Sequence record: NC_074634.1
Strand: one strand, 5' to 3'
Length of the DNA: 26,097 bases
The stretch's first letter is position 1; each line of letters opens with the position of its first letter. Positions 284 to 25,695 of this stretch are shown here, one piece after another. Position numbers and translations under genes: made by a program. Under the pieces are notes generated by a model. That model made no database searches, had not been told where the DNA came from, and saw only the letters and a list, made by a program, of their open reading frames with translations.

Positions 284-460
284 ATGAAAGTTGTGACGTT
301 CAAAATAGATGAAGACTTGTTAGAACTACTAGATGCATACGCTATAAAAAATAGGCTCCATAGATCTGAAGCCATACGTAAAGCCATAGAAAAAATGGTA
401 AGAGATGAGTTATCAAAGGAGAGAGTCCCAGTGGCAAGAGTTGAAAAGATCAGGCTTTAA
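284..460 (+). CDS. Ribbon-helix-helix transcription factor, aCcr1-like (58 aa)
   Basis: [43 protein letters not shown] is a classic RHH (beta strand VVTFKI, then RSEAIRKAI). The C-terminal [10 protein letters not shown] tail resembles the Sulfolobales cell-cycle regulator aCcr1 as recalled. Start moved from GTG 275 to ATG 284, which follows GAGTGA. Confidence 0.85.
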
Positions 461-510
461 GTTATATCTTTTTTTATGGATAATTTTTCTCACTTTTCAG
501 ATAATAATTG
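458..510 (+). repeat. Cassette-boundary repeat R1 (oligo-T, terminator-like)
   Basis: TAAGTTATATCTTTTTTTATGGATAATTTTTCTCACTTTTCAGATAATAATTG begins at the RHH stop codon. It differs from 2228-2269 by one indel and one mismatch over about 41 nt. Confidence 0.85.
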
Positions 511-520
511 TTTATTTTTA

Positions 521-955
521 TTATTCATCTTGTTTTTGTTTAAATATATATTTTAATACTCTTTTTATTGTCTCGTCATCAAAATTTAAAATTTCAAAAT
601 GTAAATAATAGTATTTTTTAAATTTTTCCTGTATTTCTTTATAATCTATTTTTGTATTTGTTGCAATCAATCGATGAAAATGCAGTTTATGTTTTTTGCC
701 ACGCTCAATAACTGAAAATATTCCAGCGTTATACTTTTGCTTAATGTACTCTTTTGGCGGTAAGTATACCTCTCCATTTGTCGTTTCTGCTTTTCTTTTT
801 CTCTTTTTCCTGTATTTTTTTGTAGTTTCAGTCATTAAATAGAAATATTCATAATTTTTAGCTTTATTTAAGAAGTTTTTCAATTTCTCTATAGTCGCCT
901 CTGAGATATTGTATTTTAACGAAATTTCGGCGACAATAATATCTATGTCTGCCAC
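521..955 (-). CDS. rep: HUH-superfamily Rep endonuclease (SIRV ORF119-like)
   Basis: Motif 1 YFYLMT, motif 2 KLHFHRLI (HUH) and motif 3 VLKYIFK (YxxK). GTG start; exact start uncertain. Confidence 0.88.
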   Translation of the reverse strand: MADIDIIVAEISLKYNISEATIEKLKNFLNKAKNYEYFYLMTETTKKYRKKRKRKAETTNGEVYLPPKEYIKQKYNAGIFSVIERGKKHKLHFHRLIATNTKIDYKEIQEKFKKYYYLHFEILNFDDETIKRVLKYIFKQKQDE

Positions 956-991
956 AAGGAAAAGATGGGTGAAAACAAAAAAAAGATTTCT

Positions 992-1174
992 TTATTTATT
1001 TGTTTCATCCGTGGCTTTGCCACCCATTTCGTCTTCAGATTTTGGCAGTTCTTCTATAAATTTTCTAATTAGGTCATTAATTGTTGTGTCGTGATCAATA
1101 CAGTATTTCTTTAATTTCTTATGTTGCTCTTTTGTAAGTCTTACCGTTATAAGGACCTTTTTCTCTTCCTCCAT
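992..1174 (-). CDS. CopG-like RHH DNA-binding protein
   Basis: KKVLITVRLTKEQHKKLKKYCIDHDTTINDLIRKFIEE fits the RHH pattern. Start set at MEEEKK (1174); 1207 is the alternative. Confidence 0.8.
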   Translation of the reverse strand: MEEEKKVLITVRLTKEQHKKLKKYCIDHDTTINDLIRKFIEELPKSEDEMGGKATDETNK

Positions 1175-1251
1175 AGCTTTATCACTTCTTGTAATACGTG
1201 GATACATTTAAAAGTAATAAAGATTTGGATAATACTTTCTATATCGATTTT

Positions 1252-1276
1252 AAGATTTAAAAATGTTGTCATCAAG
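1252..1276 (+). promoter_or_regulatory. Conserved promoter (BRE/TATA followed by GTC)
   Basis: AAGATTTAAAAATGTTGTCATCAAG. The TATA lies about 23 nt before ATG 1284. The same 25-mer occurs on the - strand at 23620-23644. Confidence 0.8.
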
Positions 1277-1283
1277 ATTTTAA

Positions 1284-1580
1284 ATGAGGCGTGGGCGTAT
1301 GAAAAACCCAAGCCGAATGGTTTCGGTTAGGGTATCTAAGTCACAATATGAATTTTTTTTAATGTATAAAGAAGAGTTAAAGGAAAAGTTATTGGAAAAG
1401 CTGAATGAAATGCAAAATATAAATATTAAATTAAAGCCAACAAAGGACAAAGAAATATATGACAATTTAATATCTTTTAGGATACCTTATCAATATTTCC
1501 AGAAAATTGAAGAGATAGCAGAGAAAAATCAAGCCAAAATAAGCGACATAGTGAGAAATATTCTATTTAACGGTGAGTAA
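1284..1580 (+). CDS. Tandem (double) RHH transcription regulator, AvtR-like
   Basis: Two RHH-like units: RMVSVRVSKSQYEFF and NLISFRIPYQYFQKIEEIAEKNQAKISDIVRNIL. Alternative start at 1299. Confidence 0.72.
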   Translation: MRRGRMKNPSRMVSVRVSKSQYEFFLMYKEELKEKLLEKLNEMQNINIKLKPTKDKEIYDNLISFRIPYQYFQKIEEIAEKNQAKISDIVRNILFNGE

Positions 1581-1581
1581 A

Positions 1582-1962
1582 ATGGCAACACTAGAAGAAA
1601 TATTTGCGGAACTAAGGGACAAAGCAAAAGAAAGCGGAAAACCAGCGACAAGAGTTCTAAAAATCAAAGGTCTGAAGAGACTTGTTGTCCAATTGAACGC
1701 TGTGCCTAGTGGGAATAATGTAAGATTTAGCATGACTGTCCATAGTTCTAGGAATTACAAGAAACAAATTGGAATTGTTGCAAATGATGCTAATGATTTT
1801 GAAATTATTTCTAAATTCTTACAGAAACATAAGGATTTACTAGATAAATATGTAAAATTTTCAGCAAGAAGAGAAGAAAATGAAGTTGAAGTTGATATTG
1901 GGGAAGATACTGAAGAGCCAAAGAAAGAGAAGAAGAAAAGGAATGTTGAGGAGGAGTTCTAA
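1582..1962 (+). CDS. Rudiviral ssDNA-binding protein (SIRV2 gp17/ORF131-like)
   Basis: KIKGLKRLVVQLNAVP...KQIGI core and an acidic tail ending VEEEF match the recalled gp17 sequence. RBS GGTGA at 1572-1576. Confidence 0.9.
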   Translation: MATLEEIFAELRDKAKESGKPATRVLKIKGLKRLVVQLNAVPSGNNVRFSMTVHSSRNYKKQIGIVANDANDFEIISKFLQKHKDLLDKYVKFSARREENEVEVDIGEDTEEPKKEKKKRNVEEEF

Positions 1963-2235
1963 ATGCCATACTATGACGAAAATCCAGATATGGAAGCAAT
2001 AAAAAATGCAATAGAGAACCTATTTTGGAGACACCAGACATCAAGGCTTGATATCATCCTACTGCCAATTAGCGAGGGCTTAGGAATATTTTATGTGATT
2101 TATACTGTCGAATATACCTACATTACCAATATTGGATCCATTGGACTTGAAAAAGGCATTTATTATTATGACAAAGAAAATAAAATTATCAAAATCCAAA
2201 TTGGAAAATTCGAAAAAATGGTACCCTTAAGTTAA
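1963..2235 (+). CDS. Hypothetical protein (90 aa), Tyr/Ile-rich, probably beta-rich
   Basis: ATG directly abuts the SSB stop codon, and the ORF ends within repeat R2. Confidence 0.7.
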   Translation: MPYYDENPDMEAIKNAIENLFWRHQTSRLDIILLPISEGLGIFYVIYTVEYTYITNIGSIGLEKGIYYYDKENKIIKIQIGKFEKMVPLS

Positions 2236-2284
2236 TATCTTTTTTTATGCATAATTTTTCTCACTTTTGTAATAATATTTCTAC
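2228..2284 (+). repeat. Cassette-boundary repeat R2
   Basis: TAAGTTAATATCTTTTTTTATGCATAATTTTTCTCACTTTTGTAATAATATTTCTAC. Positions 2246-2283 match the reverse complement of 25658-25695 at 36/38 nt. Confidence 0.85.
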
Positions 2285-2305
2285 TTCTCAATTTGCAGTT
2301 GTCAT

Positions 2306-2329
2306 ATTCATAATATTTGATATATGAAT
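2306..2329. promoter_or_regulatory. Palindromic operator-like site ATTCATA-N10-TATGAAT (copy A)
   Basis: Perfect 7-bp arms with a 10-bp spacer, 50 nt upstream of the ATPase start. Confidence 0.7.
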
Positions 2330-2378
2330 TTTGCATGCAAGCGACAAGTTAAAAGATGTTTTCATTCAATAATTTATT

Positions 2379-3686
2379 GTGGCATCCCTAGAAGAATTTA
2401 AAAAACTCTTTGAAGAAAATTCTTTTATATTTAATCCAAGGGATGAAAATCGAATATTGTACTACATATTTAGGAATACCAATATCCCTGAAGAAAAGAA
2501 GGCTAATGCATTAAAGGCATGGAGACTTGGTAATGACAATCAGTACTTTGAAATGTATAAAGCGTTTACTGACGAAATAAAATTCATATCTAAAATCGTA
2601 AAATTTAAAGAGAAAGGCGGTGAAATTGTCGCTTACTTTCAAAATGGCTTTACTGGGCGTTTCGATCCAAGGATGTTGGCAGACAATCCGGATGACGCTT
2701 ACAATTTGATGCAATCCTACTTACTAGTTAAAATCAAAAAATCAACAGACAGTTGGGAAATTTACGACATTATCCCAGTTGAGCCTGCAAAAAATGTAGA
2801 TATTGCCAAGCAATTATTACAATTTGTTGAGGCTGAGCATGTAACATATTCAATTTTACTATATGCTTTTGGCTATGACGTTGAGAAGATGGATGCCAGT
2901 GATGTTTTCTATACAATCCCGAGATTTTTCCCACTTTTTGTTTCTCCATATTCAAAAAGGCGTTATAACGTTATCGAAATTTCAAACCCTGGGACTGGAA
3001 AAACTTCAGTTTTTACAATTTTACAAGAAGTTTTTAATTTTCGATATTATACTGAACCGCCAACTTATGCCAATTTGGTGTATGATGCAAGAAATAATGT
3101 ATTCGGTGCGGTTTATTTGGCAAAAGGGCTAATCTTTGATGAAATTCAAACTTGGAAAAATAGCACAAATCAGAAAAATATGGAAGCTATAAATTCAACA
3201 TTATCGACAGGAATTGAAAATTGCATTTGGACAAGGGGTGCAGGAACAGAAAGTAAATCTGCAGTCCTTCATAGATGCCTTCCAATAATATATGCGGGAA
3301 ATCCATTATTTTTGACATTAGATAGATTTGCATCCCCTGATGTTGAGGATTATTTGCAGAAGTACGAAATTTTTACTCCTGCAATATTGGATAGGATTCA
3401 TATCATCCAAGTTGGAATAAAGAAAACCTATGATCAAATTGGCAGTAGAAGAGTGCTTTATCCTTCGGTTTTAAAAGCTCTTATCGATATTTTGCAAGAA
3501 AAACTAAATCAACAATCCCATTTTGTTGATTGTCAAATTTTCACGTCAAGACGATATGAACAGGCTGTCGACATCCAATTGATGCTAAGGACTCTAGATC
3601 TCCAAAATGATGAAATTGAAAAGAACCAAGATGAATTTTGTGCAAAATTACAGCAATATATGCGATTTATGGGCCTTGGCGGGTGA
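2379..3686 (+). CDS. AAA+ ATPase (SIRV2 gp18/ORF436-like; MCM/BrxL-type ATPase domain)
   Basis: Walker A SNPGTGKTS, Walker B LIFDEIQ, downstream TRG and LDR (arginine-finger-like) motifs. Lies between the SSB and Cas4 genes. GTG start. Confidence 0.88.
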   Translation: MASLEEFKKLFEENSFIFNPRDENRILYYIFRNTNIPEEKKANALKAWRLGNDNQYFEMYKAFTDEIKFISKIVKFKEKGGEIVAYFQNGFTGRFDPRMLADNPDDAYNLMQSYLLVKIKKSTDSWEIYDIIPVEPAKNVDIAKQLLQFVEAEHVTYSILLYAFGYDVEKMDASDVFYTIPRFFPLFVSPYSKRRYNVIEISNPGTGKTSVFTILQEVFNFRYYTEPPTYANLVYDARNNVFGAVYLAKGLIFDEIQTWKNSTNQKNMEAINSTLSTGIENCIWTRGAGTESKSAVLHRCLPIIYAGNPLFLTLDRFASPDVEDYLQKYEIFTPAILDRIHIIQVGIKKTYDQIGSRRVLYPSVLKALIDILQEKLNQQSHFVDCQIFTSRRYEQAVDIQLMLRTLDLQNDEIEKNQDEFCAKLQQYMRFMGLGG

Positions 3687-3691
3687 GAAAA

Positions 3692-4318
3692 ATGGTTTAT
3701 GAAAATAAAATTAAAGAAAGCTTTAAGAAACTTTATCCAGAAAATATCCTTTATCCATCTGAAATTGCGTACTGCTTAAGAAAAACAATTTTGGCAAGAA
3801 GAATTCAACATATAAAAAATATTGGAAGTGAGGTCGCCGATTATGGGCTGGCAATCCATAATGATGTTGAGGCTTATTTTAAGGAGAAACTTGGTTGCGA
3901 AACTGAGAAAGCAATTGAATATGAGATTGAAGGTGTAAAAATTTCAGCAAGAGTAGATTTATTATGCGGAAGTGATCTACTTGAGTTAAAAACGGTTTCA
4001 CATTTTATCCGCCAGCCTTACCAAAATCACATTGTTCAAGTTTCGCTTTATTATCATATATTATCACAACTGAATTATAAAATTGATAATGTCTATCTTG
4101 TTTATATTAATAGACAAAATTATGATGTCCAAGAATTTAAAATTCAAAAAGATCAACTTGACCAGGGATTAAAAAGCGCAATTGAGTTTATAAGGAATTA
4201 CAAAAAATACAAAGATGAACAAAACATATTCAAAATTCCAATTGGGGATACAACATTTTGTAGGAGTTGCGAATTTAGGAATATTTGCTATGGGACAATA
4301 ACAAATTTCCTTAAATGA
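3692..4318 (+). CDS. Cas4-like RecB-family nuclease with predicted 4Fe-4S cluster (SIRV2 gp19-like)
   Basis: YPSEIAYCLRK (Cys1), RVDLL..ELKT (D..ExK), QVSLY and CRSCEFRNIC (three Cys). Start moved to ATG 3692 after GGTGA. Confidence 0.92.
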   Translation: MVYENKIKESFKKLYPENILYPSEIAYCLRKTILARRIQHIKNIGSEVADYGLAIHNDVEAYFKEKLGCETEKAIEYEIEGVKISARVDLLCGSDLLELKTVSHFIRQPYQNHIVQVSLYYHILSQLNYKIDNVYLVYINRQNYDVQEFKIQKDQLDQGLKSAIEFIRNYKKYKDEQNIFKIPIGDTTFCRSCEFRNICYGTITNFLK

Positions 4319-4674
4319 TTGCGCTATGCTTTTAAACCAATTATCGCAAAAAAATACCAGAGGTAGCCAACAGTATCGATAATTTATTTATTATTATTAA
4401 AAAAAATAAATAAAAAGTTATGAAATAAATACTTATGCATATTATATATTTTAAATTTGCATAACATATAGTTTATATTTTATATCTTAAACTATGCATG
4501 CTCATTTTAAGATAATTAGTTTAAGATTTACATTTTAAAATGATGCGATCCCACTTGGTATATATTTTTCTTTTCGTATTACTGTGATAAAATTGGATGC
4601 GTATTAGTGTATGATTCTCTGGATCACTCTAGATATGCTATGCTTTTAATCTGGTCATTATTAAGTATATTATT
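4319..4674. other. Long AT-rich non-coding region containing inverted repeats
   Basis: No ORF of 60 aa or more. TTTATTTATT (4383-4392) pairs with AATAAATAAA (4405-4414), and CATTTTAAAATG (4531-4542) is a perfect palindrome. Confidence 0.55.
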
Positions 4675-5001
4675 ATGAAAGGTAAATTTGACGATTGGAA
4701 TAAATATAGATCTGACGTTAATAAAATAATACTTGAGTATTTTAACAAAGTCGGTATAATGGCGACAACAAGAGCTTTATACTTCTCATTTGCGCAAAAA
4801 ATATTGGCAATTGTTAGAAAACATCAAGATGAAAGCCTTATCAACAAATTAATTGAGGGAAATATCCAATATTTCGTAACAGCGTTTGATGCAAACGAAA
4901 AAGTATTGCGTGATATTGTAAAAATTATAATTTTAGCTAAAATCGTTAAAATGAACCCAGATGATATACTGAAAGAAGTGCTAACGCAAAAATCCAACTA
5001 A
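4675..5001 (+). CDS. Major capsid protein paralogue (SIRV2 fold, N-terminally shortened)
   Basis: Aligns without gaps to the MCP C-terminal bundle: GIMATTRALYFSFAQKI vs GVTGPSRAIYQGYGLKV, and GNIQYFVTAFDANEKVL vs GLKAYYVSAYGANPEIL. Confidence 0.85.
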   Translation: MKGKFDDWNKYRSDVNKIILEYFNKVGIMATTRALYFSFAQKILAIVRKHQDESLINKLIEGNIQYFVTAFDANEKVLRDIVKIIILAKIVKMNPDDILKEVLTQKSN

Positions 5002-5005
5002 CCAT

Positions 5006-5029
5006 ATACAAAATATTATGTATATGGAT
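5006..5029. promoter_or_regulatory. Degenerate ATTCATA-N10-TATGAAT site upstream of the MCP gene (copy G)
   Basis: ATACAAA-ATATTATGTA-TATGGAT, followed by a TATA-like TTTTTATAA at about 5043-5051 and ATG at 5083. Confidence 0.45.
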
Positions 5030-5082
5030 TTTTTGCATTCAATTTTTATAAGCTATTAATTCTAATATTTAATTGACGAAAA

Positions 5083-5487
5083 ATGGCGAAAGGAAGAACA
5101 CCAAGAAGTTTTTCACAAAGGTATGGTAAATGGAACGCCAAATTTACTGCATTTAGCAATCCGACTGTTGCCAGCACAATATTGACTAATGTTGCCCCAA
5201 TTGCGCAAGGAAACTTCCAAACTAACGTACCTAAATTTACATCAGTTAACGAACAAGTTTCGGCGGTATTGACTCAGTACGGAGTTACCGGTCCTTCTAG
5301 AGCAATATACCAAGGCTACGGTTTGAAAGTCGCAAGAGCTTTAAATAGAATCGGCGCTGGTCCCGCCTTAACAAATATGGTTGCTGGTCTCAAAGCTTAT
5401 TACGTCAGTGCATATGGCGCTAACCCAGAAATACTTGACGCTGTGACTAACATAATCCTAGGATCTCCAACTGGATATGTAAGTTAA
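5083..5487 (+). CDS. mcp: Major capsid protein (134 aa, SIRV2 P134 family)
   Basis: MAKGRTPRSFSQRYGKWNAKF...ILGSPTGYVS is nearly collinear with the SIRV2 MCP sequence as recalled. Confidence 0.99.
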   Translation: MAKGRTPRSFSQRYGKWNAKFTAFSNPTVASTILTNVAPIAQGNFQTNVPKFTSVNEQVSAVLTQYGVTGPSRAIYQGYGLKVARALNRIGAGPALTNMVAGLKAYYVSAYGANPEILDAVTNIILGSPTGYVS

Positions 5488-5500
5488 ATTTTAAAGTCAA

Positions 5501-5526
5501 TTTTCTATTTTTTTCCCTTTCTTTTG
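5501..5526 (+). terminator. Oligo-T terminator after mcp
   Basis: Long pyrimidine/T tract beginning 14 nt after the stop codon. Confidence 0.6.
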
Positions 5527-5567
5527 CAATTGTTTTCTTTAAAAATGTAAACTTTTAACGTTTAATC

Positions 5568-5792
5568 ATGTTTGAGGAATATTTAAAGGAAAAAGGTTTT
5601 GAACCCCATCATATTTCAATTCTTAAAGATTTCTTGATTGAAATAAAAGAAGCATTAAGCATAAATGCTAGGAATTATGAATTAGACGAAATTATAAATT
5701 CTATTGTTGAATATTTTGCAATAACGTATGGATTGAAAAAAGAAGATCTTTATCGATTAATAAATGAGGCAATCCAGGACGGTGTTGTCTAA
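5568..5792 (+). CDS. 74-aa acidic protein; probable third, minimal MCP-fold paralogue
   Basis: Gapless 67-residue alignment to the MCP bundle with 12 identities and a conserved hydrophobic pattern (IVEYFAITYGLKKEDL vs LKAYYVSAYGANPEIL). Confidence 0.65.
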   Translation: MFEEYLKEKGFEPHHISILKDFLIEIKEALSINARNYELDEIINSIVEYFAITYGLKKEDLYRLINEAIQDGVV

Positions 5793-6812
5793 ATGGCAAA
5801 AACACTCATTTTGACTATGGGATATTCTTCAATTAAAAATGTCGCTGAAGATATTGCATCAGTCGTCGGTAATGCAGTGATTGATGTCGAACCAACTTTA
5901 TACGTAAATAACGTCAACAAATTCGATAGACTTATTGTATTTGTCCCATTTACTCCGCCTTTACTGAATAACTACTTGTTAGTTTACAATTATTTTCAGG
6001 GTGAGAAGTATTTCTATACGACAGTTGACGGAAAACCAGTTTTACAAGCCACAAATGAGTATATTGCAAGAAATATAAAGTATATACCAAATTCTCAGTT
6101 TTCAGCTGAAAATCTAAAATCTGCTAATCTTGGTGTTGATATTCCAGTTTTCCATGGGGTAAATTTCGACATAGTGAAAAAAGCAGAACAATTAGTTCCA
6201 AAATTGAGACAGAAACTAGATTTAGACTTTCCAGATAGCATAAAAATTGGAATTGTTACGGGGATGACAAAAAGGAAGAATATCGATTTGTTTGTCGAAA
6301 CAACTCGTTACTTAAATGAAAAAATGCCAGATGTTGCTAAAAATGTTCACTTCTTTGTAATTTCTCATGCAGATTTCCAAAAACTTGAAGTTCCGCAAAA
6401 CGTTCACTTTGTTGCACAGTTTGGTTACCAAAGCAGAGAAAAAGTATTTGCATTTTACGGTTCTATGGATTATGTATTTGTCCCATCTGGATGTGAAGGT
6501 TTTGGTCTCCCAGTCCTTGAGGCAATGGCTATGGGCACGCCGGTTATACACATGGCTATTCCACCGTTCACTGAATTTACATCATGGCAGTGGAACTTTT
6601 TGTTTAAAGATGACGACGTCATAGAATATTACGATAAAGACCGTGGTCAAATATGGAAAATTCATAGATTTAAACCAGAAACTGGGGCATTAGCGATAGC
6701 GACTGCTGTCATGGCAAGTGATAGAGAAGAAAGAAGTCGTCATCTTAAAGATTTAGCTAAAAAATATGATATTAAGTTTTTGTATAAAAGATTTTTAGAG
6801 GGTTTCGAATAA
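5793..6812 (+). CDS. Glycosyltransferase, GT-B fold (GT4-like; SIRV ORF335-like)
   Basis: FVPSGCEGFGLPVLEAMAMGTPVI signature and KRKN nucleotide-sugar-binding motif. Confidence 0.93.
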   Translation: MAKTLILTMGYSSIKNVAEDIASVVGNAVIDVEPTLYVNNVNKFDRLIVFVPFTPPLLNNYLLVYNYFQGEKYFYTTVDGKPVLQATNEYIARNIKYIPNSQFSAENLKSANLGVDIPVFHGVNFDIVKKAEQLVPKLRQKLDLDFPDSIKIGIVTGMTKRKNIDLFVETTRYLNEKMPDVAKNVHFFVISHADFQKLEVPQNVHFVAQFGYQSREKVFAFYGSMDYVFVPSGCEGFGLPVLEAMAMGTPVIHMAIPPFTEFTSWQWNFLFKDDDVIEYYDKDRGQIWKIHRFKPETGALAIATAVMASDREERSRHLKDLAKKYDIKFLYKRFLEGFE

Positions 6813-7739: not shown

Positions 7740-7785
7740 GATTTAAATTTATATGCTTATAAGCTTAAAAATGATACATTTAATT

Positions 7786-9062: not shown

Positions 9063-9113
9063 TTCAAATATTATTATTCAACATATGCTTTATAAGCAAA
9101 TTGGTATCCAGTT

Positions 9114-9461: not shown

Positions 9462-9469
9462 ATTTTTTA

Positions 9470-10885: not shown

Positions 10886-10926
10886 TTCACATCTGTTTAT
10901 TTTTTCTTTTCTTTTCATTTTTATTG

Positions 10927-10960
10927 CTCAATATCCAACAGTCATATTCATAATATTAAT
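10927..10960 (+). repeat. 34-bp inverted repeat, left arm (overlaps palindrome copy B, 10946-10969)
   Basis: CTCAATATCCAACAGTCATATTCATAATATTAAT matches the reverse complement of 13190-13223 at 33/34 nt. Confidence 0.9.
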
Positions 10961-11023
10961 TATATGCATGTTGCGCATTGAATTTATTTTAACTTGTTGC
11001 GACAAAATAAATAGTGATAAAAA

Positions 11024-11320: not shown

Positions 11321-11350
11321 TTATTTTTTTAACCTCTTTTTCCGAATATA

Positions 11351-13138: not shown

Positions 13139-13189
13139 TTTGATTATTTTTTCCTTAAATGCAATAAATCAAACGACATAATTCTTATG

Positions 13190-13223
13190 ATTAATATTAT
13201 GAATATGACTGTTGAATATTGAG
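13190..13223 (-). repeat. 34-bp inverted repeat, right arm (overlaps palindrome copy C, 13181-13204)
   Basis: Reverse complement reads CTCAATATTCAACAGTCATATTCATAATATTAAT. Confidence 0.9.
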
Positions 13224-13270
13224 TAACAAAAACTATAATAAATATGTTTGTGCATTTTATTTAGATAGAA

Positions 13271-16618: not shown

Positions 16619-16619
16619 A

Positions 16620-17819
16620 ATGTCCTACGTAAGCAAATATTCCATAATTAGATCAGCAGATTGGAATCAAATTGTACAAACTTTACAATTAATTAATAGT
16701 ATGTGGCAACAAACATTAAGTGCGATACAACAACTTACAAATATAAATGCACAAGTAAACTATCCAAATTATCAAACACAAGAACAAAATGCAATAAATA
16801 TAATACAAAATCTTTTTAATTATTTGCAAAATCCAACAATAACAACTCCAACCCCAAATATTCCAACTGCAAGTCCCGGAATGATTTTAACTGCAAGCAT
16901 GATGAATTCTTTGACAAATGCAGTGCAAAAATTGTACAATTCAATAATGCCAACGCCTTTAACAGAAATTTCAGAGGTTTCAGGTGAAGATATCGTAACT
17001 TCAGATCATTGGAATAAAATCGTTAAAGCAATAAATGAATTAAAAAATGCATTTAGCGTAATAAATGTACCGTCACAAGGGGGTCAATTTTACCTAACGT
17101 CACCGTATGTATTTATAGACCCTGGAGTGGCAGGACTTGTAATCACTGCAGAAGTTCTTGTTAAAAATCATATTTTATACATATTTGTATATACCCCACA
17201 AGCAAAATCAAATATATGGTATGAATTTGTTGGATTAGAAAAAATAGATAATATTTTCGCCGGCGGGAATAATGCAAACTTTAACATTACAGAATCCATA
17301 AAAATACGAAATATGTATCTGTATGGGGATTCTGGCTTTATAAAACAATACGATAATTCAATAACTGAAAATATAATGACTGTTGGTTCCCAAAACTATG
17401 TTGAAACAATTAATAATTCAATTGCAAAAAGTGTATTAATGATTGGGGATAAAGGAAATATACAATCATTCGACTATTCAATAATTGAAAATATAATAAT
17501 GGTTGGATATTCAACTGATATTGAGCCATGTAATAATTCAATAATAAAAAGAATATTAATGATTGGGAATTCCGGCACTATAAGACCAATTGATTATTCA
17601 ATAATTGAAAATGCAATAATTGATGGAAATAACAATTCTGTAAATACATATGATTCCTCAGTAATCCAAAATCTTTTCATATGTGGCGAACAAAATTCAA
17701 TCTCAGGATCTGGTATTGTAAATCTCTATTTATGTAATCCAAACAATAATGTCGGTAGTGGAGTACAAAATATAATAACAGGTTCTCCATTATGCCAGAT
17801 TATCTGTGGTTCAAGTTGA
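16620..17819 (+). CDS. Putative fibre/spike protein with C-terminal beta-solenoid (399 aa)
   Basis: Three WN/MN modules in the N-terminal region and 20-aa tandem repeats at the C-terminus. ATG 16620 lies just after the ORF1115 stop. Confidence 0.75.
   Translation: MSYVSKYSIIRSADWNQIVQTLQLINSMWQQTLSAIQQLTNINAQVNYPNYQTQEQNAINIIQNLFNYLQNPTITTPTPNIPTASPGMILTASMMNSLTNAVQKLYNSIMPTPLTEISEVSGEDIVTSDHWNKIVKAINELKNAFSVINVPSQGGQFYLTSPYVFIDPGVAGLVITAEVLVKNHILYIFVYTPQAKSNIWYEFVGLEKIDNIFAGGNNANFNITESIKIRNMYLYGDSGFIKQYDNSITENIMTVGSQNYVETINNSIAKSVLMIGDKGNIQSFDYSIIENIIMVGYSTDIEPCNNSIIKRILMIGNSGTIRPIDYSIIENAIIDGNNNSVNTYDSSVIQNLFICGEQNSISGSGIVNLYLCNPNNNVGSGVQNIITGSPLCQIICGSS
17295..17714 (+). repeat. Seven 60-bp (20-aa) coding tandem repeats
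   Basis: Units start at 17295, 17355, 17415, 17475, 17535, 17595 and 17655, with consensus [NY]SIIxNIxMxG. Confidence 0.85.
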
Positions 17820-17825
17820 TCAAAT

Positions 17826-17849
17826 ATTCATATAATCAATATTATGAAT
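17826..17849. promoter_or_regulatory. Palindrome ATTCATA-N10-TATGAAT (copy D)
   Basis: Perfect arms, 50 nt upstream of the methyltransferase ATG, with TATA-like CTTTTAAAA between them. Confidence 0.7.
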
Positions 17850-17898
17850 ATGCAAATTGATTGTTTGCTTTTAAAACGTCCACACTAGGAATTAAAAT

Positions 17899-18369: not shown

Positions 18370-18375
18370 GACAAA

Positions 18376-18966: not shown

Positions 18967-18967
18967 C

Positions 18968-20023: not shown

Positions 20024-20632
20024 TTTATTTTTTTGCATCAAATATTTGTAAATTTCATCAAACATTTTCCTAACTTTATCAGGGTCGTAGAAATATCTGC
20101 GCTTTTCCATGAAATAACCGCCGACATCCAGTGCGGGAAATTGGTATCTTACTACAACTTTGAGATCATTCCAATTTGAAGCCCCCAAATACCATGCTTT
20201 GTCTGGTTCAACTCTCCTAAAAAATTCGGGAAGACTGTAATCGTGAAGTCCAGGTGTTGCTGAGTAACCATAAAAATATTTGAATCCATGCTCTTTCAAT
20301 TGGTCTACAATTTCCAAATCGGGGTCTAATGAATGAATTGGTACAATAAAAATTATCCTACGGAGGACATCCAAATTTGCAATTTTTTCAACTTTTGGTA
20401 AAGGAGTATAATCGGGATATAGCGCAATCTTAATCTCTCTAATTTTTTTAATTAAAAGTTTAACATATTGGACATAAGCATATTGTCCGCCATGAATTAA
20501 AAATTCTTTATCGTCAAAAAATTCTGGATAAATGTACATATTTGGATAGCGAATATTATATTTTCTCATAGTATTAATATGTGGACCTTTCGCCACCCCA
20601 ACTATTGGATAAGTTTGAGACATACCACACAT
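20000..20632 (-). CDS. TIM-barrel protein, TGT/DpdA-like (DUF6610-like)
   Basis: Ordered motifs FFDD, IALYPDY, IFIVPIH, YGYS, WYLGAS and ALDVGG follow the strand-end pattern of TGT-fold proteins. Recognised by eye only. Confidence 0.55.
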   Translation of the reverse strand: MCGMSQTYPIVGVAKGPHINTMRKYNIRYPNMYIYPEFFDDKEFLIHGGQYAYVQYVKLLIKKIREIKIALYPDYTPLPKVEKIANLDVLRRIIFIVPIHSLDPDLEIVDQLKEHGFKYFYGYSATPGLHDYSLPEFFRRVEPDKAWYLGASNWNDLKVVVRYQFPALDVGGYFMEKRRYFYDPDKVRKMFDEIYKYLMQKNKSIFDYIK

Positions 20633-21886
20633 TCACTCTGGCGGTATTTCTTTAAATATTTCATCAAGTTGCACACCTTGCATTTTTCTAATGACGTATG
20701 TCAGTATTCCAACAATTGGCGGTATAAATATCGTTGCAATATCAAAATATAGATTTCCAGTAAACATTTCTGACCTAAATTGTAAATTTGTAAATGAAGA
20801 ATATAAAACCATAGTTGCACTAAAGACCAACACGATTGCAGACAATACCGCAGTCGGCAAAATTCTTCTATCTTCCTTTACAAATTTCAAACTTGCAAAT
20901 GCAACAATTAGATAATTCCAAAATATAAACCATAGGTCATCAACAATCAAACTAACGTGAAAGCCCAGATAATTTTCTACAAAGTTGAAAATTTCTGCAA
21001 TTCCAAAACTAAGTAAAATTGAATTTGTTGGCGTTCCGCCTTTAACATTTGCTAAGAAAGCGGGCAAGACTCTATCAAACGATAGCGCAAACATGACTCT
21101 AGTTGTCGCCCCTGCATTTATCATAGCATATAGCAAATACCATGTTAATGCAGATAATGCAACAATTTCTAATTCTAGATTTACGCCGACTATAACTATT
21201 AAAATTGCAAATATCGCAGTAACGGTATATGCAATAAAATATCCTGCAAGTAAGCTTTTGCCAATTTTTTGCATTTCTCCCGCAAAATATGATGGGGAAT
21301 TTATAAATGCGTAAAGCATCATTACAAAAAGCGCAGTCATAGTGAGAGTATTTGTATTTATCTCAAGTTGTGTAGGTAAAACTGCATGATTTAAATTAGT
21401 CACAATCATAATTATAATACCAAGAATCTGAAATGCCACTAATGCGACAACTGCTTTCGCATAATATTTCACTTTTGACGCTAACAAATAGATTATTCCA
21501 ATATAAACTGTCGTAATTAAGAAAAGATCTAAATTTGACAAATTAAATCGCATAAATTCTAAAGACGCTAGGACTGGCATAGACAACCAAAATGATGTTA
21601 GGACCGCCATACCGCTAATTGTCCCTACAATTCCTCCAAAAGCTCTTGCAACATAAACATAATCTCCAGTAGACCTTGGGATTATTCTGTTCAACAAATA
21701 GTAGTTTAGCATTAGTGGAATACCTAAAATTGTCGCTAAAAGAATTGATAAAAACGCGTTAGCGTGAATGAGAAATAAAACGTAGGAAACTGCCCCCGCA
21801 GGTCCTAAAAAAGCGAAATTTAAGGAAAAAACATCTATTGGCTTAAATTCCTTTATTAACCCAGTTGACTGCCTTAAGAATTTCAT
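20633..21886 (-). CDS. APC-superfamily amino acid/polyamine permease (about 11-12 TM)
   Basis: FLRQSTGLIKEF..FSLNFAFLGP, PRSTGDYVYVARAFG and RVMFALSFDRVLPAFLANV are APC signatures; multiple hydrophobic segments. Confidence 0.9.
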   Translation of the reverse strand: MKFLRQSTGLIKEFKPIDVFSLNFAFLGPAGAVSYVLFLIHANAFLSILLATILGIPLMLNYYLLNRIIPRSTGDYVYVARAFGGIVGTISGMAVLTSFWLSMPVLASLEFMRFNLSNLDLFLITTVYIGIIYLLASKVKYYAKAVVALVAFQILGIIIMIVTNLNHAVLPTQLEINTNTLTMTALFVMMLYAFINSPSYFAGEMQKIGKSLLAGYFIAYTVTAIFAILIVIVGVNLELEIVALSALTWYLLYAMINAGATTRVMFALSFDRVLPAFLANVKGGTPTNSILLSFGIAEIFNFVENYLGFHVSLIVDDLWFIFWNYLIVAFASLKFVKEDRRILPTAVLSAIVLVFSATMVLYSSFTNLQFRSEMFTGNLYFDIATIFIPPIVGILTYVIRKMQGVQLDEIFKEIPPE

Positions 21887-21904
21887 ACCAATTTAACCAA
21901 CCGC

Positions 21905-21921
21905 TGACTACATTTTTAAAT
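21905..21921 (-). promoter_or_regulatory. Conserved TATA-GTC promoter for the permease operon, overlapping the tfb stop codon
   Basis: - strand reads ATTTAAAAATGTAGTCA, about 30 nt upstream of ATG 21886. Confidence 0.65.
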
Positions 21922-22720
21922 TTAAAATTTTTGCATTTTTCCTAAGCCCCGCCCCAGTGACCCCGCATTTTTCTTCAATCATTGGCTGGGTTATAAGGTA
22001 TCCACTTTGTTTAGCTAAATAATATAAAATTGTACATGCAACAGTTTTTGGATTTTTACCCTGGGCTTCAATTTCTTTTGCAATATTAAGCGCTTTTTCA
22101 ATTATCTCAATTGGCAATTCCAGCCTCACTCCACATTCTTTTATATAATCTTCAATTATAAATCGTGGTATTTTTTCATCAAATTCTTTTAATATCCTAA
22201 AATACATACTAACAAATTCCTTTTTTGGGATTCCGAATAATTCATCAACTTTTTTATAATATTCATCAAATGGCATTATAATTTTCAATTTCCTATAAGC
22301 TAAATAAATAGAAACCAAAACAATAATTTCATATCCTAGATATCTTAAATGTTTATTTTTCCATAGCTTTTGTAAAATTCTACCTGCCTCTTGTTTTATT
22401 GCATCATTAGCATTCAATTTTTCAACTGTAGATGATAAAAATCTTAAAGCATGCACTAAAATTCTCTTATTATTTGAATAAATTGCACATTTTTTCATCT
22501 TTTTTGGTTTAATTGCAGTCGTTGGTAGGAAACCTGAATTAACGAAATTGTTTGGGTTTATTGCTTTAGCTCTTGCCCTATCTTCAAACTGCTCAACATT
22601 ATAAGCCCTCCAATCAATACCTTCATCTACAACTCTATCTTCTAGAACTTCTCCAGTTTCAGTGCAAATATATTCGCCTCTCTCTGCATCAAATATGATC
22701 TTATCAGGAGGACAGCTCAT
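21908..22720 (-). CDS. tfb: Transcription initiation factor B homologue
   Basis: N-terminal CPPDKIIFDAERGEYICTETGEVLED..DWRAY closely matches the Sulfolobales TFB1 ribbon/B-reader as recalled; two degenerate cyclin repeats follow. Confidence 0.92.
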   Translation of the reverse strand: MSCPPDKIIFDAERGEYICTETGEVLEDRVVDEGIDWRAYNVEQFEDRARAKAINPNNFVNSGFLPTTAIKPKKMKKCAIYSNNKRILVHALRFLSSTVEKLNANDAIKQEAGRILQKLWKNKHLRYLGYEIIVLVSIYLAYRKLKIIMPFDEYYKKVDELFGIPKKEFVSMYFRILKEFDEKIPRFIIEDYIKECGVRLELPIEIIEKALNIAKEIEAQGKNPKTVACTILYYLAKQSGYLITQPMIEEKCGVTGAGLRKNAKILNLKM

Positions 22721-22782
22721 GAGAAGATCTCAAACCGCCTACATTTTTATTTCTTGCCAAGAACTACAATTTCAAACTTCAT

Positions 22783-22806
22783 ATTCATAATATTATAAAT
22801 ATGCAT
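22783..22806. promoter_or_regulatory. Palindrome copy E upstream of tfb
   Basis: ATTCATA-ATATTATAAA-TATGCAT, 63 nt upstream of the tfb start. Confidence 0.65.
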
Positions 22807-22828
22807 TGTTTGTTCAAATTAAGACAAT

Positions 22829-22883
22829 GTAGAAATAGTATATCAAATGTGAGAAAAATTAACCATAAAAAAAGAGAATTAAC
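22829..22883 (-). repeat. Cassette-boundary repeat R3
   Basis: - strand reads GTTAATTCTCTTTTTTTATGGTTAATTTTTCTCACATTTGATATACTATTTCTAC, starting at the stop codon of the 74-aa ORF. Confidence 0.8.
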
Positions 22884-23103
22884 CGACAATTTGACCCAAA
22901 ATTGGCTCAAGCCATGGTGGAAAGAATAAATGGCAACTGCCATCACTGCACGAATGGCAAGTATCAACATCAATAACGATAATTATTGGCAAAACTCCTG
23001 GATATTTTCTTGAAAATCTCTCAGCCTTTTCTTGGACATAACCGCTTTGAGATTTCAACCATTCTTTGTATTCTTTTTCATCTTTAAATTTTAGAACTTT
23101 CAT
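22879..23103 (-). CDS. Hypothetical protein (74 aa) with a CxxCxxxxCH cluster
   Basis: TCHSCSDGSCH may bind metal. RBS GGTGA upstream. Confidence 0.7.
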   Translation of the reverse strand: MKVLKFKDEKEYKEWLKSQSGYVQEKAERFSRKYPGVLPIIIVIDVDTCHSCSDGSCHLFFPPWLEPILGQIVG

Positions 23104-23112
23104 ACCTTAGCA

Positions 23113-23256
23113 TCACCCATATACGGCTTCTAGGTACCAAAGTAAAGCCTCACATTCATCTTCTGGCAAACTTGCCTCCTCCAAAGCGACAATAGTGTCT
23201 GGGCTATATCCCTCCAAGCCATATCCCTTTTGCTTTAAAAGCTCTAGGCAGTTCAT
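23113..23256 (-). CDS. Small acidic protein (47 aa), absent from the ORF track
   Basis: Reads MNCLELLKQKGYGLEGYSPDTIVALEEASLPEDECEALLWYLEAVYG*. GGTGAG lies 6 nt upstream, its own TGA forms the GGTGA RBS of the next gene, and it fills the gap almost exactly. Confidence 0.75.
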   Translation of the reverse strand: MNCLELLKQKGYGLEGYSPDTIVALEEASLPEDECEALLWYLEAVYG

Positions 23257-23263
23257 TGACAAC

Positions 23264-23599
23264 TCACCTTATTCTTAAGATGTAATAAAGATCATAACCA
23301 ATTTTATTCAACTCTTCTTCAGTTTGGATTACTTGTCCTTCCTCTAACCTTCTCTTCAATACAAATGCAATTGCGTTATCTCCAGGTTTGAAATAAATTG
23401 CAATCCTGCTTGTCTGAACTGGAATTCCCAATAAATTCGATAAAATGTTAGCAGTCGCACTGTGACCGATAGCACTTACAATATTTCCGGCATTATTTAC
23501 GATATCTCTTGCCTCCTTAAAATTTATCTTTTTTATTTGAAATTCTGCTTCCTGCCCTTCAAACGGGACAATTAGGCTATTTAGGAGATACAAGACCAT
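23264..23599 (-). CDS. acrIII-1: AcrIII-1 ring nuclease (DUF1874; cA4-degrading anti-CRISPR)
   Basis: LYLLNSLIVP, SAIGHSATA (catalytic His), SRI and KRRLEEGQV match the DUF1874 / SIRV1 gp29 / STIV B116 family. RBS GGTGAG before ATG 23599. Confidence 0.95.
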   Translation of the reverse strand: MVLYLLNSLIVPFEGQEAEFQIKKINFKEARDIVNNAGNIVSAIGHSATANILSNLLGIPVQTSRIAIYFKPGDNAIAFVLKRRLEEGQVIQTEEELNKIGYDLYYILRIR

Positions 23600-23619
23600 T
23601 CGACTCACCTTAAAATGAA

Positions 23620-23644
23620 CTTGATGACAACATTTTTAAATCTT
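23620..23644 (-). promoter_or_regulatory. acrIII-1 promoter, identical to 1252-1276
   Basis: 25/25 match AAGATTTAAAAATGTTGTCATCAAG. Confidence 0.85.
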
Positions 23645-23648
23645 TAAA

Positions 23649-24491
23649 TCATATAACTCTACAAAATTGCTTTTTCTTACATTCTTCAATTATATCTTCA
23701 AATTTAATATTATCTATTTCATTCGTAAATCCATAATCTTGTAAAATTACTTTATACATATTATCTCCAACAACAAATTCGGAAACTTTATAGAACCATG
23801 CCTTATGCCTGTCAGCATCTAGTTCTAATGCCAACCACCCAATATTTGCCTCCCTCCTACCGTACCAGTAAACTTCTTGCCTACCTCTTGGAATAAATAC
23901 TGCCTTCTCTTTAAGCTTATTGTATAAATCCAAATCTTGATATTCAAAAATGTAAAGACCATGACCTAGAATTCTCCAGTAAATTTCCCATAACGCAAAA
24001 TGATCAATTATATCTGGTAATGACAATATGTTGAAATTACCAATATTGACGACATAAGGATGTGCAATTCCAAATTTTTCAGCAGGAGTTAACTTAGTTG
24101 CTAAATCATTTGCAAAGACTTTATTTAATCTTGTAGTATCCACAGTGTAATAATTATAAAGTATAAGATTATTATTGGAAATTATACCATGAATTGCTAA
24201 TTTATCAAATTTCCATAAAATGTACTCTGTCGCAATCATATCTTGAATTGATGGGGCATCTGGACCTCTTGGGTGGGTATGCAAAATGGCGTGAACAGTT
24301 TCTGGCATGTACTTTTGCAAAGGACTGAGATCTGCACTGCCTTTGTCACCCTGATAATAATCGCTAAACCACTCGCCTAAAACAATTAAATATTCTCTAT
24401 CTGTGGTTTTTGACTTTTGATAAACATCTTTCAAAAAATCTAGGTTTTTAAAAATAGTAAGAACATTATTTCTAACTTTCGATCTGGACAT
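23649..24491 (-). CDS. JAB/MPN+ (JAMM) domain protein with an unknown C-terminal domain (280 aa)
   Basis: Upstream Glu (REY) followed by HTHPRGPDAPSIQD, an exact H-x-H-x7-S-x2-D motif (nt 24240-24281). Confidence 0.8.
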   Translation of the reverse strand: MSRSKVRNNVLTIFKNLDFLKDVYQKSKTTDREYLIVLGEWFSDYYQGDKGSADLSPLQKYMPETVHAILHTHPRGPDAPSIQDMIATEYILWKFDKLAIHGIISNNNLILYNYYTVDTTRLNKVFANDLATKLTPAEKFGIAHPYVVNIGNFNILSLPDIIDHFALWEIYWRILGHGLYIFEYQDLDLYNKLKEKAVFIPRGRQEVYWYGRREANIGWLALELDADRHKAWFYKVSEFVVGDNMYKVILQDYGFTNEIDNIKFEDIIEECKKKQFCRVI

Positions 24492-24556
24492 ATAGCATCA
24501 ATATATTAAGAAGTGATAACATTTATCAAGATTTCACAGAAAATAAGGAGTAGTTG

Positions 24557-24600
24557 TAATAATATCTGGAAAGTGAAAAAAATCAACCAAAAAAATAGAT
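24557..24600 (-). repeat. Degenerate cassette-boundary repeat R5
   Basis: - strand ATCTATTTTTTTGGTTGATTTTTTTCACTTTCCAGATATTATTA aligns with R1, including the CAGATA segment. Confidence 0.6.
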
Positions 24601-24663
24601 AGAGACAAAAGTTGAAAATTAAAAATTAGGAAATTGGAGAAAAGGAAAAAAAGATTAACTTAA

Positions 24664-25188
24664 TCAATAATGTGTGTAATAAATAAGTGCATCAAGAGCA
24701 ATAATGTCCTTACCGTCTAAAATGTCCTTCAACATTTTCTGCAACCCCTGCGGTATGCTAAACTCAACATGTTCCCCGTTCCTCAAATACTGGATTTTAG
24801 CAATCCCATTGTTATATGTTACCTCAACATTTTCAATCTGGATATAATCGATAACTTCTCCGCCAGGTATGTCAGTGTATTCTGGAACAGCACAAATTGC
24901 AATGTTATCGTTCCTTGTTTTTAAGAGAGCTATTTTCCCAACGATTGCAATTCTACCAAGTTTACTCACTGCAACAGAATAGTAGAAACCCCCTAGCTTA
25001 TATAGTACATATGACGGCACCATTGTATCTTCAAAGCCTGGCACCAAAAACTTTATGTAAACCAATTTTTTGAACTGAACTTGTTGCTCTTCTACTTGAG
25101 TTTGAATTTGACCTTGGCTTAACTCTTGATTTTCCATTTGGTTTGACTCTTGAGTTTTAACTTGATTTATCTCTTCTTCTTCGCTCAT
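24664..25188 (-). CDS. Hypothetical protein (174 aa) with a Q/E-rich disordered N-terminus
   Basis: RBS GGTGA and an upstream AGAAAGATTTAAATA BRE/TATA. Confidence 0.8.
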   Translation of the reverse strand: MSEEEEINQVKTQESNQMENQELSQGQIQTQVEEQQVQFKKLVYIKFLVPGFEDTMVPSYVLYKLGGFYYSVAVSKLGRIAIVGKIALLKTRNDNIAICAVPEYTDIPGGEVIDYIQIENVEVTYNNGIAKIQYLRNGEHVEFSIPQGLQKMLKDILDGKDIIALDALIYYTHY

Positions 25189-25268
25189 CCTTTTTCACCA
25201 ATATATACTTCTCAATACAAATATTTAAATCTTTCTATCATGAAATCACTTAGATTTACGTTTCCATT

Positions 25269-25292
25269 ATTCATATTATCCATATTATGTTT
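25269..25292. promoter_or_regulatory. Degenerate palindrome copy F
   Basis: ATTCATA-TTATCCATAT-TATGTTT, 81 nt upstream of ORF174. Confidence 0.45.
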
Positions 25293-25330
25293 ATGTATTG
25301 CAAATTGAAAATTTGGAATTGTTAGGATAA

Positions 25331-25582
25331 TTAATCGCCCCAAATTAACAAACCTAAAATTGATGCAGGATATTTTTCCAATTCAGCAAACGACTGCGCA
25401 TATAAAAAATTACTAAGCGTTGCATATTTTGAATATGCATAGATATCTTGATTAAAAATATCAATCCTTATTAAATTTTCTGTTTCTGGATATATTTCTG
25501 CATATTGGTCAATTTCGTTTTTATCATTATATTTATAGATCTTTATCTTACAGTTTCCAATTTCTTTCTCATACCTTGCCAT
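25331..25582 (-). CDS. Hypothetical protein (83 aa)
   Basis: RBS GGGGGTGA and its own promoter at 25611-25631. Confidence 0.8.
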   Translation of the reverse strand: MARYEKEIGNCKIKIYKYNDKNEIDQYAEIYPETENLIRIDIFNQDIYAYSKYATLSNFLYAQSFAELEKYPASILGLLIWGD

Positions 25583-25610
25583 CCTATATCACCCCCGCTA
25601 AAACCGTACA

Positions 25611-25631
25611 ATGACTACATTTTTATATCTT
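25611..25631 (-). promoter_or_regulatory. Conserved TATA-GTC promoter
   Basis: AAGATATAAAAATGTAGTCAT matches the acrIII-1 promoter at 19/21 nt. Confidence 0.75.
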
Positions 25632-25657
25632 CCTAAAACTAGGAAATGCAAAAACAT

Positions 25658-25695
25658 TAGAAATATTATTATAAAAGTGAGAAAAATTAGGCATA
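25658..25695 (-). repeat. Cassette-boundary repeat R4
   Basis: - strand TATGCCTAATTTTTCTCACTTTTATAATAATATTTCTA matches R2 at 36/38 nt. Confidence 0.85.

Follow-up and report, generated by a model that had tools for sequence, protein, structure and literature searches.

A dispersed repeat in the arms of the rudivirus SSRV1: a possible boundary module of accessory gene units

Five copies near both genome ends

The archaeal rod-shaped virus SSRV1 is a rudivirus with 37 annotated genes (sequence record NC_074634.1; the analysed stretch of 26,097 nt is referred to as the window). Its genome carries a sequence of about 55 bp, here called R, in five copies near both ends (R1 to R5, Table 1), and the central 20 kb is free of it. 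We hypothesize, with moderate confidence, that R is a boundary module of independently transcribed accessory (early, largely anti-defence) units in rudivirus arms. Close relatives of SSRV1 are ARV2 (83% identity), MRV1 and ARV3; a search of IMG/VR for closer ones, meant for comparison at the level of junctions, returned ARV2, ARV1, SRV and SIRV-like contigs only. The SSRV1 record contains no terminal inverted repeats (ITRs), the deposited genome being described as nearly complete, and further copies of R at the outer ends may therefore be missing from it.

Two sequence profiles of R, the first built from the five SSRV1 copies and the second from 40 copies in 11 viruses, both recover exactly five copies in the window, with no match from 2285 to 22828. 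The 17-nt core TAATTTTTCTCACTTTT is matched seven times at up to three mismatches, against 0.89 expected, and none of 100 shuffles reaches seven. Five of these matches are the copies of R; the other two (2922 on the plus strand and 11284 on the minus strand) have three mismatches each and are without profile support. Block-wise dinucleotide shuffles of SSRV1, ARV2 and SIRV2 gave no profile match in 20 trials, compared with 30 in the real sequences. The five copies are real and non-random.

Reading of the sites and both profiles bear out the initial annotation, made from the letters of the window, which had placed five inward-pointing copies at these positions and strands and none in the central core. 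Its observation that three copies begin at a stop codon is correct as well: the stops of gp02 (458-460), gp07 (2233-2235) and gp31 (22881-22879) lie inside the 5' ends of R1, R2 and R3. The description of the copies as pointing in the direction of transcription holds for the upstream neighbour of R1 and fails on its downstream side, where gp03 is convergent with gp02. On the right, the copies separate [gp37], [gp36, gp35], [gp34, gp33, gp32, gp31] and [gp30 (TFB) and onward], a partition that fits the annotation and the Pfam matches. Among the gene labels given there, AcrIII-1 is right for gp33 (DUF1874), and JAB for gp34 corresponds to a sub-threshold Pfam match only.

Anatomy and conservation

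The consensus of the 40 copies reads tt..ttatTa.cTatTTTTATg.ataATTTTTcTCA..TTtga.ATA.TAtTTCTA. Its best-kept columns are TAT[G/C], ATTTTTYTCA (past which comes ATAnTATTTCTA) and ATAnTAnTTCTA, and the core can be written as TAT[G/C]nnnATTTTTYTCA-(8 nt)-ATAnTAnTTCTA, in which ATTTTTYT is invariant in all 40. The non-T positions TAT[G/C], TCA, ATAnTA and CTA are among the most conserved columns throughout three virus families, and R2 and R5 are identical at 36 of 38 positions over TATGC..TTTCTA. Conservation thus extends well past the oligo-T, as had been claimed; a consensus in which the T-tract alone is kept across relatives is not what the 40 copies show.

R comes in two layouts. The compact one (R1-R3) has a stop-proximal TAAGTTAAT..T7 segment joined to the core. 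In the extended one (R4, R5 and all SIRV2 copies), 40-70 nt of T/C-rich filler lie between the stop-proximal T-rich segment and the core. At gp35 the filler opens with TTAAGTTAATC-T7, the stop-proximal segment that R1-R3 carry joined to the core. R5 and the SIRV-type copies have TTAGCTAATTCTATC in place of the T7 run of the SSRV1 copies, and T7 is absent from the SIRV-type ones altogether; R5 is 0.82 identical to SIRV2 copies. Orthologues of R1 are found in ARV2 (2381-2427) and ARV3 (2494-2543), and R4 is orthologous to ARV2 26228-26279, its best match being the ARV2 copy at 992 (0.89).

Within the gp07-gp08 spacer of five viruses from two genera (SSRV1, ARV2, MRV1, ARV3 and ARV1), R is the sole block that is invariant out to ARV1. 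Non-orthologous copies are about 73% identical over the same 45 nt, even across genera, and the identity between ARV3 and a 41-kb lipothrixvirus contig rises to 40 of 44 positions.

No Rfam covariance model matched in the window, and the folding of R as RNA is no better than that of shuffled sequences (z-scores 0.03 to 1.21). R as a structured RNA was rejected on both counts, which favours a signal at the DNA level or a linear one. Repeat and fold analyses also gave no inverted repeats inside R. A small conserved open reading frame (ORF) starting from the ATG of R was rejected, as the frames vary from copy to copy and stop after 7-26 codons, and the ATG is missing from SIRV-type copies. The annotated ORF59 of SRV, which covers the R copy of that virus, looks spurious.

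Occurrence in other viruses

A profile search of nine rudiviruses yielded 59 copies, all of them inward-pointing (plus strand in the left arm, minus strand in the right): SSRV1 5, ARV2 11, ARV3 5, MRV1 1, SRV 1, ARV1 2, SIRV2 14, SIRV1 9 and SIRV3 11. The right arm of MRV1 has neither accessory units nor R. Beyond the rudiviruses, R occurs in the lipothrixvirus AFV2 and the 41-kb AFV-like contig and in the bicaudaviruses ATV and STSV1; distant BLAST matches to R2 also led to other Sulfolobales viruses. This spread within and across families had escaped the initial annotation.

A strict 30-nt pattern of R found 12 stretches in IMG/VR, exclusively in Sulfolobales viruses and mostly in rudi- and lipothrixviruses. 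In 185,579 prokaryotic species genomes (one each) the same pattern found 12 stretches, none in Sulfolobales; three are SIRV-like contamination of bacterial assemblies and nine are isolated chance matches. R as a host element was thereby rejected. Since the strict pattern is matched in Sulfolobales viruses and in no Sulfolobales host genome, R is a virus element and not a host signal.

The contaminating contigs are worth recording in their own right. They are NZ_JBHSPB010000048.1, NZ_BAAAUT010000071.1 and NZ_BAAADE010000050.1, labelled Streptomyces gamaensis, Planomonospora alba and Paenochrobactrum glaciei; they are of low GC content (about 28%), are 81-92% identical to SIRV2 and bear copies of R. 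Almost certainly they represent rudivirus contamination of these three bacterial assemblies.

Neighbouring genes and promoters

The context of R was scored with the annotation of seven genomes, comprising 56 copies. All 56 are intergenic, and 55 are preceded by the end of a co-oriented gene at a distance of -6 to +78 nt, with one outlier at 511 nt. This outlier, in ARV2, follows an unannotated ORF homologous to gp37 (26916-27185, minus strand; 52% over 90 aa), the presence of which explains why one interval between two R copies of ARV2 appears to be without a gene. A co-oriented start follows 52 of the copies, 33-146 nt away.

Most copies are followed, 20-92 nt downstream, by a strong TFB recognition element and TATA box (BRE/TATA) of the AAGATTTAAATA or TTTAAAATTGTCAT type. 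At R2 and R3, what comes next is instead a 24-bp palindrome, another dispersed motif, with the promoter behind it. The core promoter of gp30, AAGAAATAAAAATG, is invariant in SSRV1, ARV2, ARV3 and MRV1. Features of the window are collected in Table 1.

Table 1. Copies of R and associated features in the window (strand "." for palindromic motifs)
Feature	Position	Strand	Description
R1	458..511	+	Compact copy; starts at TAA of gp02 (aCcr1-clade ribbon-helix-helix (RHH) protein); between convergent gp02 (+) and gp03 (-)
R2	2228..2284	+	Compact copy overlapping gp07 stop; 94 nt upstream of gp08 (ATPase)
R3	22829..22883	-	Compact copy overlapping gp31 stop; 108 nt upstream of gp30 (TFB homologue)
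R4	24553..24606	-	Degenerate extended copy; 61 nt after gp35 stop, 61 nt before gp34 start
R5	25658..25710	-	Extended copy, SIRV-like 5' part (TTAGCTAATTCTATG); 78 nt after gp37 stop, 75 nt before gp36 start
T/C-rich filler	24607..24663	-	After gp35 stop; T7 at +11, T5 at +38; putative terminator
T-rich filler	25711..25786	-	After gp37 stop; six T5-T6 runs; putative terminator
BRE/TATA-like AGGAAGATATAAAAATG	25618..25634	-	Downstream of R5; putative strong gp36 promoter of the published early-promoter type (PMC11065993)
GAAATCTTGATAAATGTTATCAC	24513..24535	-	Downstream of R4; putative gp34-gp31 promoter, TATA then GT(T/G)xC; conserved in ARV2
AAGAAATAAAAATG	22742..22755	-	BRE/TATA-like putative gp30 core promoter, about 25 nt before ATG
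Palindrome-like putative operator	2302..2325	.	Between R2 and gp08; separate dispersed motif, outside R
24-bp palindrome CATATTCATAATATTATAAATATG	22780..22803	.	Between R3 and TFB promoter; one mismatch to perfect palindrome

Comparison with known elements

Bhoobalan-Chitty et al. (2024; PMC11065993) described highly similar regulatory sequences around a strong BRE/TATA in front of the small terminal early genes of SIRV2, and equivalent sequences, virus by virus, in ARV2, ARV3, lipothrixviruses and bicaudaviruses; they were used to predict anti-defence genes. The region analysed there was the 100 bp in front of each start codon, and the sequences on either side of the core promoter were noted to vary from virus to virus. 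SSRV1 and MRV1 are outside that study, which does not discuss terminators or recombination. R resembles this published element in consisting of dispersed, similar intergenic sequences before small unrelated single genes at both rudivirus termini. Both occur also in lipothrixviruses and bicaudaviruses, several genes per genome share R, all of them in the arms (5 in SSRV1, 11 in ARV2 and 14 in SIRV2), and R lies 20-92 nt upstream of exactly those BRE/TATA cores. That copies sit upstream of early and anti-defence promoters of this type had not been noticed in the initial annotation.

The two are nevertheless not the same. A strong BRE plus TATA core (TTTAWATA) is not found within R itself, only downstream of it; R is conserved across genera and families, whereas the flanks of the published element are virus-specific; and R is also found at convergent junctions and ahead of promoters that are not early ones (gp08, TFB). 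With its 3' end 33-146 nt before the next ATG, R falls partly inside and partly outside the 100-bp region of that study. R thus adjoins the published element and is distinct from it, and its 3' half may partially overlap with it. Conserved control regions of early and anti-defence genes in archaeal viruses are known; R is new as a variant within that class.

Another point of reference is the site of the RHH protein SvtR at SIRV1 gp30, a distal high-affinity site about 80 nt upstream of the TATA box from which spreading tolerates variable distance (PMC5569661). R likewise lies tens of bp upstream of BRE/TATA at a variable distance, the SSRV1 arms code for several RHH proteins (gp02, gp04), and the core shows a weak 21-bp repetition. 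Its sequence, however, is unlike the consensus of SvtR, AvtR or F55. A link between R and Aca8 was rejected, as three viruses without Aca8 (ARV2, ARV3 and SSRV1) are rich in R, and SRV, which does encode Aca8, has almost none.

Termination and the proposed boundary function

TTTTTYT is the termination motif of Sulfolobus and SSV1 in the account of Reiter et al. (1988) that PMC9608457 gives. R has the ATTTTTYT centre in common with such oligo-T terminators, and its compact copies add T7 directly after the stop: behind the stop codons of gp02, gp07 and gp31, T7 is located at +4 to +8 and TTTTTCT at +19 to +23. Judging from their T-runs, the filler after gp35 is probably the primary terminator of that gene, and the filler after gp37 is probably the primary terminator region there. 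Poxviruses too have a linear genome with variable terminal regions and a T5NT early termination signal. The likeness to R (linear genome, accessory and host-interaction genes of both arms transcribed inward or outward as single early units, a TTTTTNT-type stop) can serve as a lead only, the viruses being unrelated and poxvirus termination requiring viral factors that act on RNA.

These data may suggest that R is a plain duplicated terminator in which only the T-runs matter, the rest being conserved by recent common descent of the copies. The runs directly after three stop codons agree with that, as does their identity with the known motif, and so does MRV1, where the T6 is kept at the R1 position and the core is gone. 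However, the non-T columns are conserved in three families, and the T7 run is wholly absent from SIRV-type copies. Plain T6-T8 runs end gp04, gp10, gp11, gp21 and gp22 without R. The copies are also old, being common to genera whose intergenic DNA is otherwise unalignable. Oligo-T terminators of Sulfolobus and SSV1 need no further conserved sequence, whereas R keeps about 25 more positions; moreover, R is confined to the arms, and core genes use plain T-runs. At gp35, at gp37 and in all SIRV2 copies, T-runs occur 40-78 nt before the R core, which together with the T-run ends that lack R argues that the conserved core is not simply a terminator. Termination alone is insufficient to explain R, and we regard a mere duplicated terminator as improbable.

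According to the boundary module proposed here, the stop-proximal T-rich part (TAAGTTAAT..T7 or the longer T/C-rich filler) would serve as oligo-T terminator of the incoming unit, and the core would add another TTTTTYT stop signal. The core appears to be more than a stop signal, because it is too conserved across genera and families for that. It could be the binding site of a small virus-encoded DNA-binding protein, which would either insulate the next promoter from read-through or nucleate regulation of the strong promoter 20-90 bp downstream; by analogy, a distal nucleation site of the SvtR type would tolerate variable spacing. Sequence-specific recognition is suggested by the identity of non-orthologous copies across genera and by the absence of R from hosts, and the reader of R is most likely a virus-encoded protein. 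Candidate binders are the small RHH and helix-turn-helix proteins encoded in the arms, including gp02, whose aCcr1-clade RHH is common to these virus families. Gain, loss and arm-to-arm exchange of cassettes at R would be a consequence and not the selected function; such exchange would be seen at R since its copies form direct repeats inside an arm and inverted ones across the two arms.

Several observations weigh against this proposal. MRV1, a viable isolate, has lost the core of R1 and retained a T6 run, and in extended copies the share of the core in termination may be small. Four copies lie at convergent junctions, with no promoter to control, and one copy (SIRV2 5441) lies at a divergent junction without a co-oriented gene upstream. 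The distances from R to the TATA box (20, 27, 30, 39, 44, 48, 56, 63 and 92 nt) are not fixed, which argues against a stereospecific activator or repressor site. A fixed spacing was looked for and not found in this range, and since the spacing varies and four copies serve no promoter, a promoter element of fixed geometry is unlikely. The early genes aca8 and acrIIIB1 of SIRV2 have no R upstream. Candidate half-sites ATAATTTTTCT and ATAnTATTTCT are spaced by 21 bp, the offset at which the self-similarity of the core peaks, and the self-identity of 0.56 that the core shows there (0.27-0.46 at other offsets) is modest for AT-rich DNA. R as a known operator was rejected, there being no match to the SvtR, AvtR or F55 consensus. 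The resemblance to the C68 site of pSSVx (TATG(C/GG)TTTTC) is loose. So is that to the aCcr1 box AGTATTA, which is seen in a minority of copies and is exact in one of them (ARV3 2039); an aCcr1 box alone does not describe R.

R might also act in a strand-specific manner at the level of RNA, as a stability or processing signal in the 3' untranslated region of the upstream mRNA, or as an antisense promoter. In the latter version, the reverse strand (TAGAAAT-AnTAT..) would be a weak BRE/TATA firing RNA into the early gene in order to shut it off. Co-orientation with the upstream gene in 55 of 56 copies, including four convergent junctions without a downstream promoter, is in line with such a role, and on the reverse strand AGAAAT, which fits the archaeal BRE consensus RNWAAW, precedes an octamer rich in A and T. 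The TATA of this strand is poor, however, RNA secondary structure is absent from R (z-scores 0 to +1.2), and in extended copies most transcripts would be expected to stop at the T-runs, before they reach the core. We consider a function of this kind very unlikely.

If R is a discrete boundary element, it offers a sequence handle for delimiting accessory and anti-defence units in Sulfolobales viruses. The handle would reach units with promoters too divergent for promoter-based discovery, and viruses that were not part of earlier analyses (SSRV1, MRV1). Conservation in three families and absence from hosts point to a shared factor (a terminator, insulator or operator protein), a candidate new node in the regulation of archaeal viruses.

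Probable gene exchange in the arms

In the initial annotation, R was further proposed to be a homology anchor, kept as repeated homology that allows cassettes to be deleted, duplicated or swapped without an integrase, within and between arms and between co-infecting viruses. Comparison of related genomes gives this idea some substance. The interval from the RHH gene to gp06 holds one R in SSRV1 and ARV2 and a unit [R2039-promoter-gp05-R2494] in ARV3 (its gp05 is the published ADG.51, also found in ATV2; PMC11065993), and SSRV1 R1 looks as if the 5' flank of the first ARV3 copy had been fused with the 3' half of the other. The gene gp31 is absent from ARV2 and the indel ends at the T-tract of R3; the gp36 unit, extra in SSRV1 with respect to ARV2, begins at most 10 nt after the 3' edge of R5; and the order of right-arm cassettes differs between these two viruses, with R at the joints. 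SSRV1 has the genes for AcrIII-1, ORF47 and ORF74 plus R ahead of TFB in its right arm; ARV1 has this block in the left arm, ahead of the helicase gene, and ATV contains it too. The arm breakpoints of SIRV1, SIRV2 and SIRV3 gather at two places, within 0-25 nt of R and about 71 nt past it, where the promoter block ends. The ITRs of these viruses have their inner edges (2118, 1602 and 1563) just after a block of R plus promoter, and R-R tandems without a gene in between occur in them as well.

On the other hand, gene conversion or concerted evolution between copies was looked for and not seen: within-genome paralogues (0.738 identical) are no closer than non-orthologues of different genomes (0.732), compared with 0.82 for orthologues. 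Of three arm indels in Hoswirudivirus, one is bounded by R on both sides and two on one side only, and large indels of the core region happen without R. R also makes up a quarter to half of each terminal spacer, so that intergenic breakpoints fall near it by default, and any conserved intergenic block would mark the ends of alignable sequence. Homology alone, moreover, does not require about 73% identity of the same 45 nt across genera and families. The predicted coincidence of breakpoints with R was therefore borne out in part, with several at R or at R plus promoter, and the anchor idea is left with indels, an arm-to-arm relocation and ITR edges that abut R or its block with the promoter. 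Exchange at blocks of R plus promoter probably happens and shapes the arms; for recombination as the purpose for which R is maintained there is no evidence, and the anchor as an explanation of R seems doubtful to us, though less so than a plain terminator or an RNA-level signal. If recombination at R does take place, it would explain the fast turnover of the arms and the presence of the same anti-CRISPR modules in different arms and families.

A bolder version would make the block of R plus promoter a shared, integrase-free site of cassette exchange for a pan-viral pool of anti-defence genes. Co-infecting rudi-, lipothrix- and bicaudaviruses of Sulfolobales would keep the same junction of about 50 bp, and recombination proteins of their own (a single-stranded DNA-binding protein, an annealing ATPase, a Cas4-like nuclease and a Holliday-junction resolvase) could move promoter-ORF units between arms and families. 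The function would resemble that of the integron attC site and would work by homology. Common to both systems are one repeat at the 3' end of each cassette in uniform orientation (55 of 56 after a co-oriented gene, 59 of 59 inward) and a content and order of cassettes that vary between relatives. R differs from attC in lacking imperfect inverted repeats and a fold as single strand, its cassettes come with promoters of their own, and only some indels are bounded by R on both sides. No integrase is present among the 37 annotated SSRV1 genes or the Pfam matches of the arm proteins. R as an attC site or a miniature inverted-repeat transposable element was rejected for the lack of inverted repeats, of target-site duplications (the flanks are gene ends and promoters) and of an integrase. 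We attach little probability to the exchange site as a pan-viral device.

As a separate observation, the right-arm unit gp34 (JAB-like)-gp33 (AcrIII-1)-gp32-gp31 (22879-24491) is syntenic with ATV 2083-4059 (ORF209 / ORF117-ORF48-(ORF59a)-ORF79) and with ARV1 3384-4106 (ORF108-ORF54-ORF74a). A whole anti-defence module is therefore common to Rudiviridae and Bicaudaviridae.

Other features of the genome

The 24-bp palindrome mentioned above, close to CATATTCATAATATTATGAATATG, is found at 2302-2325, 5003-5026, 10943-10966, about 13186-13216, about 17826-17852 and 22780-22803, upstream of gp08, gp11 (capsid), gp20/gp21, gp23, gp25 and gp30 (TFB). Conserved also in ARV2 and MRV1, it has the look of an operator through which a dimeric regulator would control core (middle/late) genes.

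An inverted pair of 31 nt, GATTTTAAGATTTAAAAATGTTGTCATCAAG, with 97% identity lies at 1246-1276 (plus strand) and 23620-23650 (minus strand), just upstream of gp05 and gp33 (DUF1874/AcrIII-1). It consists of a TATA box followed by a GTC element, and copies exist in ARV2 and MRV1 as well; two unrelated units in opposite arms thus have one promoter type. A promoter-like sequence, AAGATTTAAAAT, lies at about 575-595 (plus strand) of the window, inside gp03 on the opposite strand, and is conserved at the equivalent places of ARV2 and ARV3. It is located 72-84 nt downstream of R1 at the convergent junction, antisense to gp03, and could reflect a coding constraint or an antisense promoter.

MRV1 has an ITR of 80 bp (1-80 and 20189-20269): the 5' end of gp01, its RHH gene, recurs as an inverted copy on the far side of the TFB gene. 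SSRV1 has a specific non-coding insert of 280 nt (4322-4602) between gp09 (Cas4-like) and gp10, absent in ARV2, ARV3 and MRV1; it holds no ORF of at least 30 aa and had no match in a phage collection. Three tandem repeats of 120 nt (the others being 72% and 62% identical to the first) are located inside gp24 at 17324-17683, and the length of this repeat region also varies among ARV2, ARV3 and MRV1.

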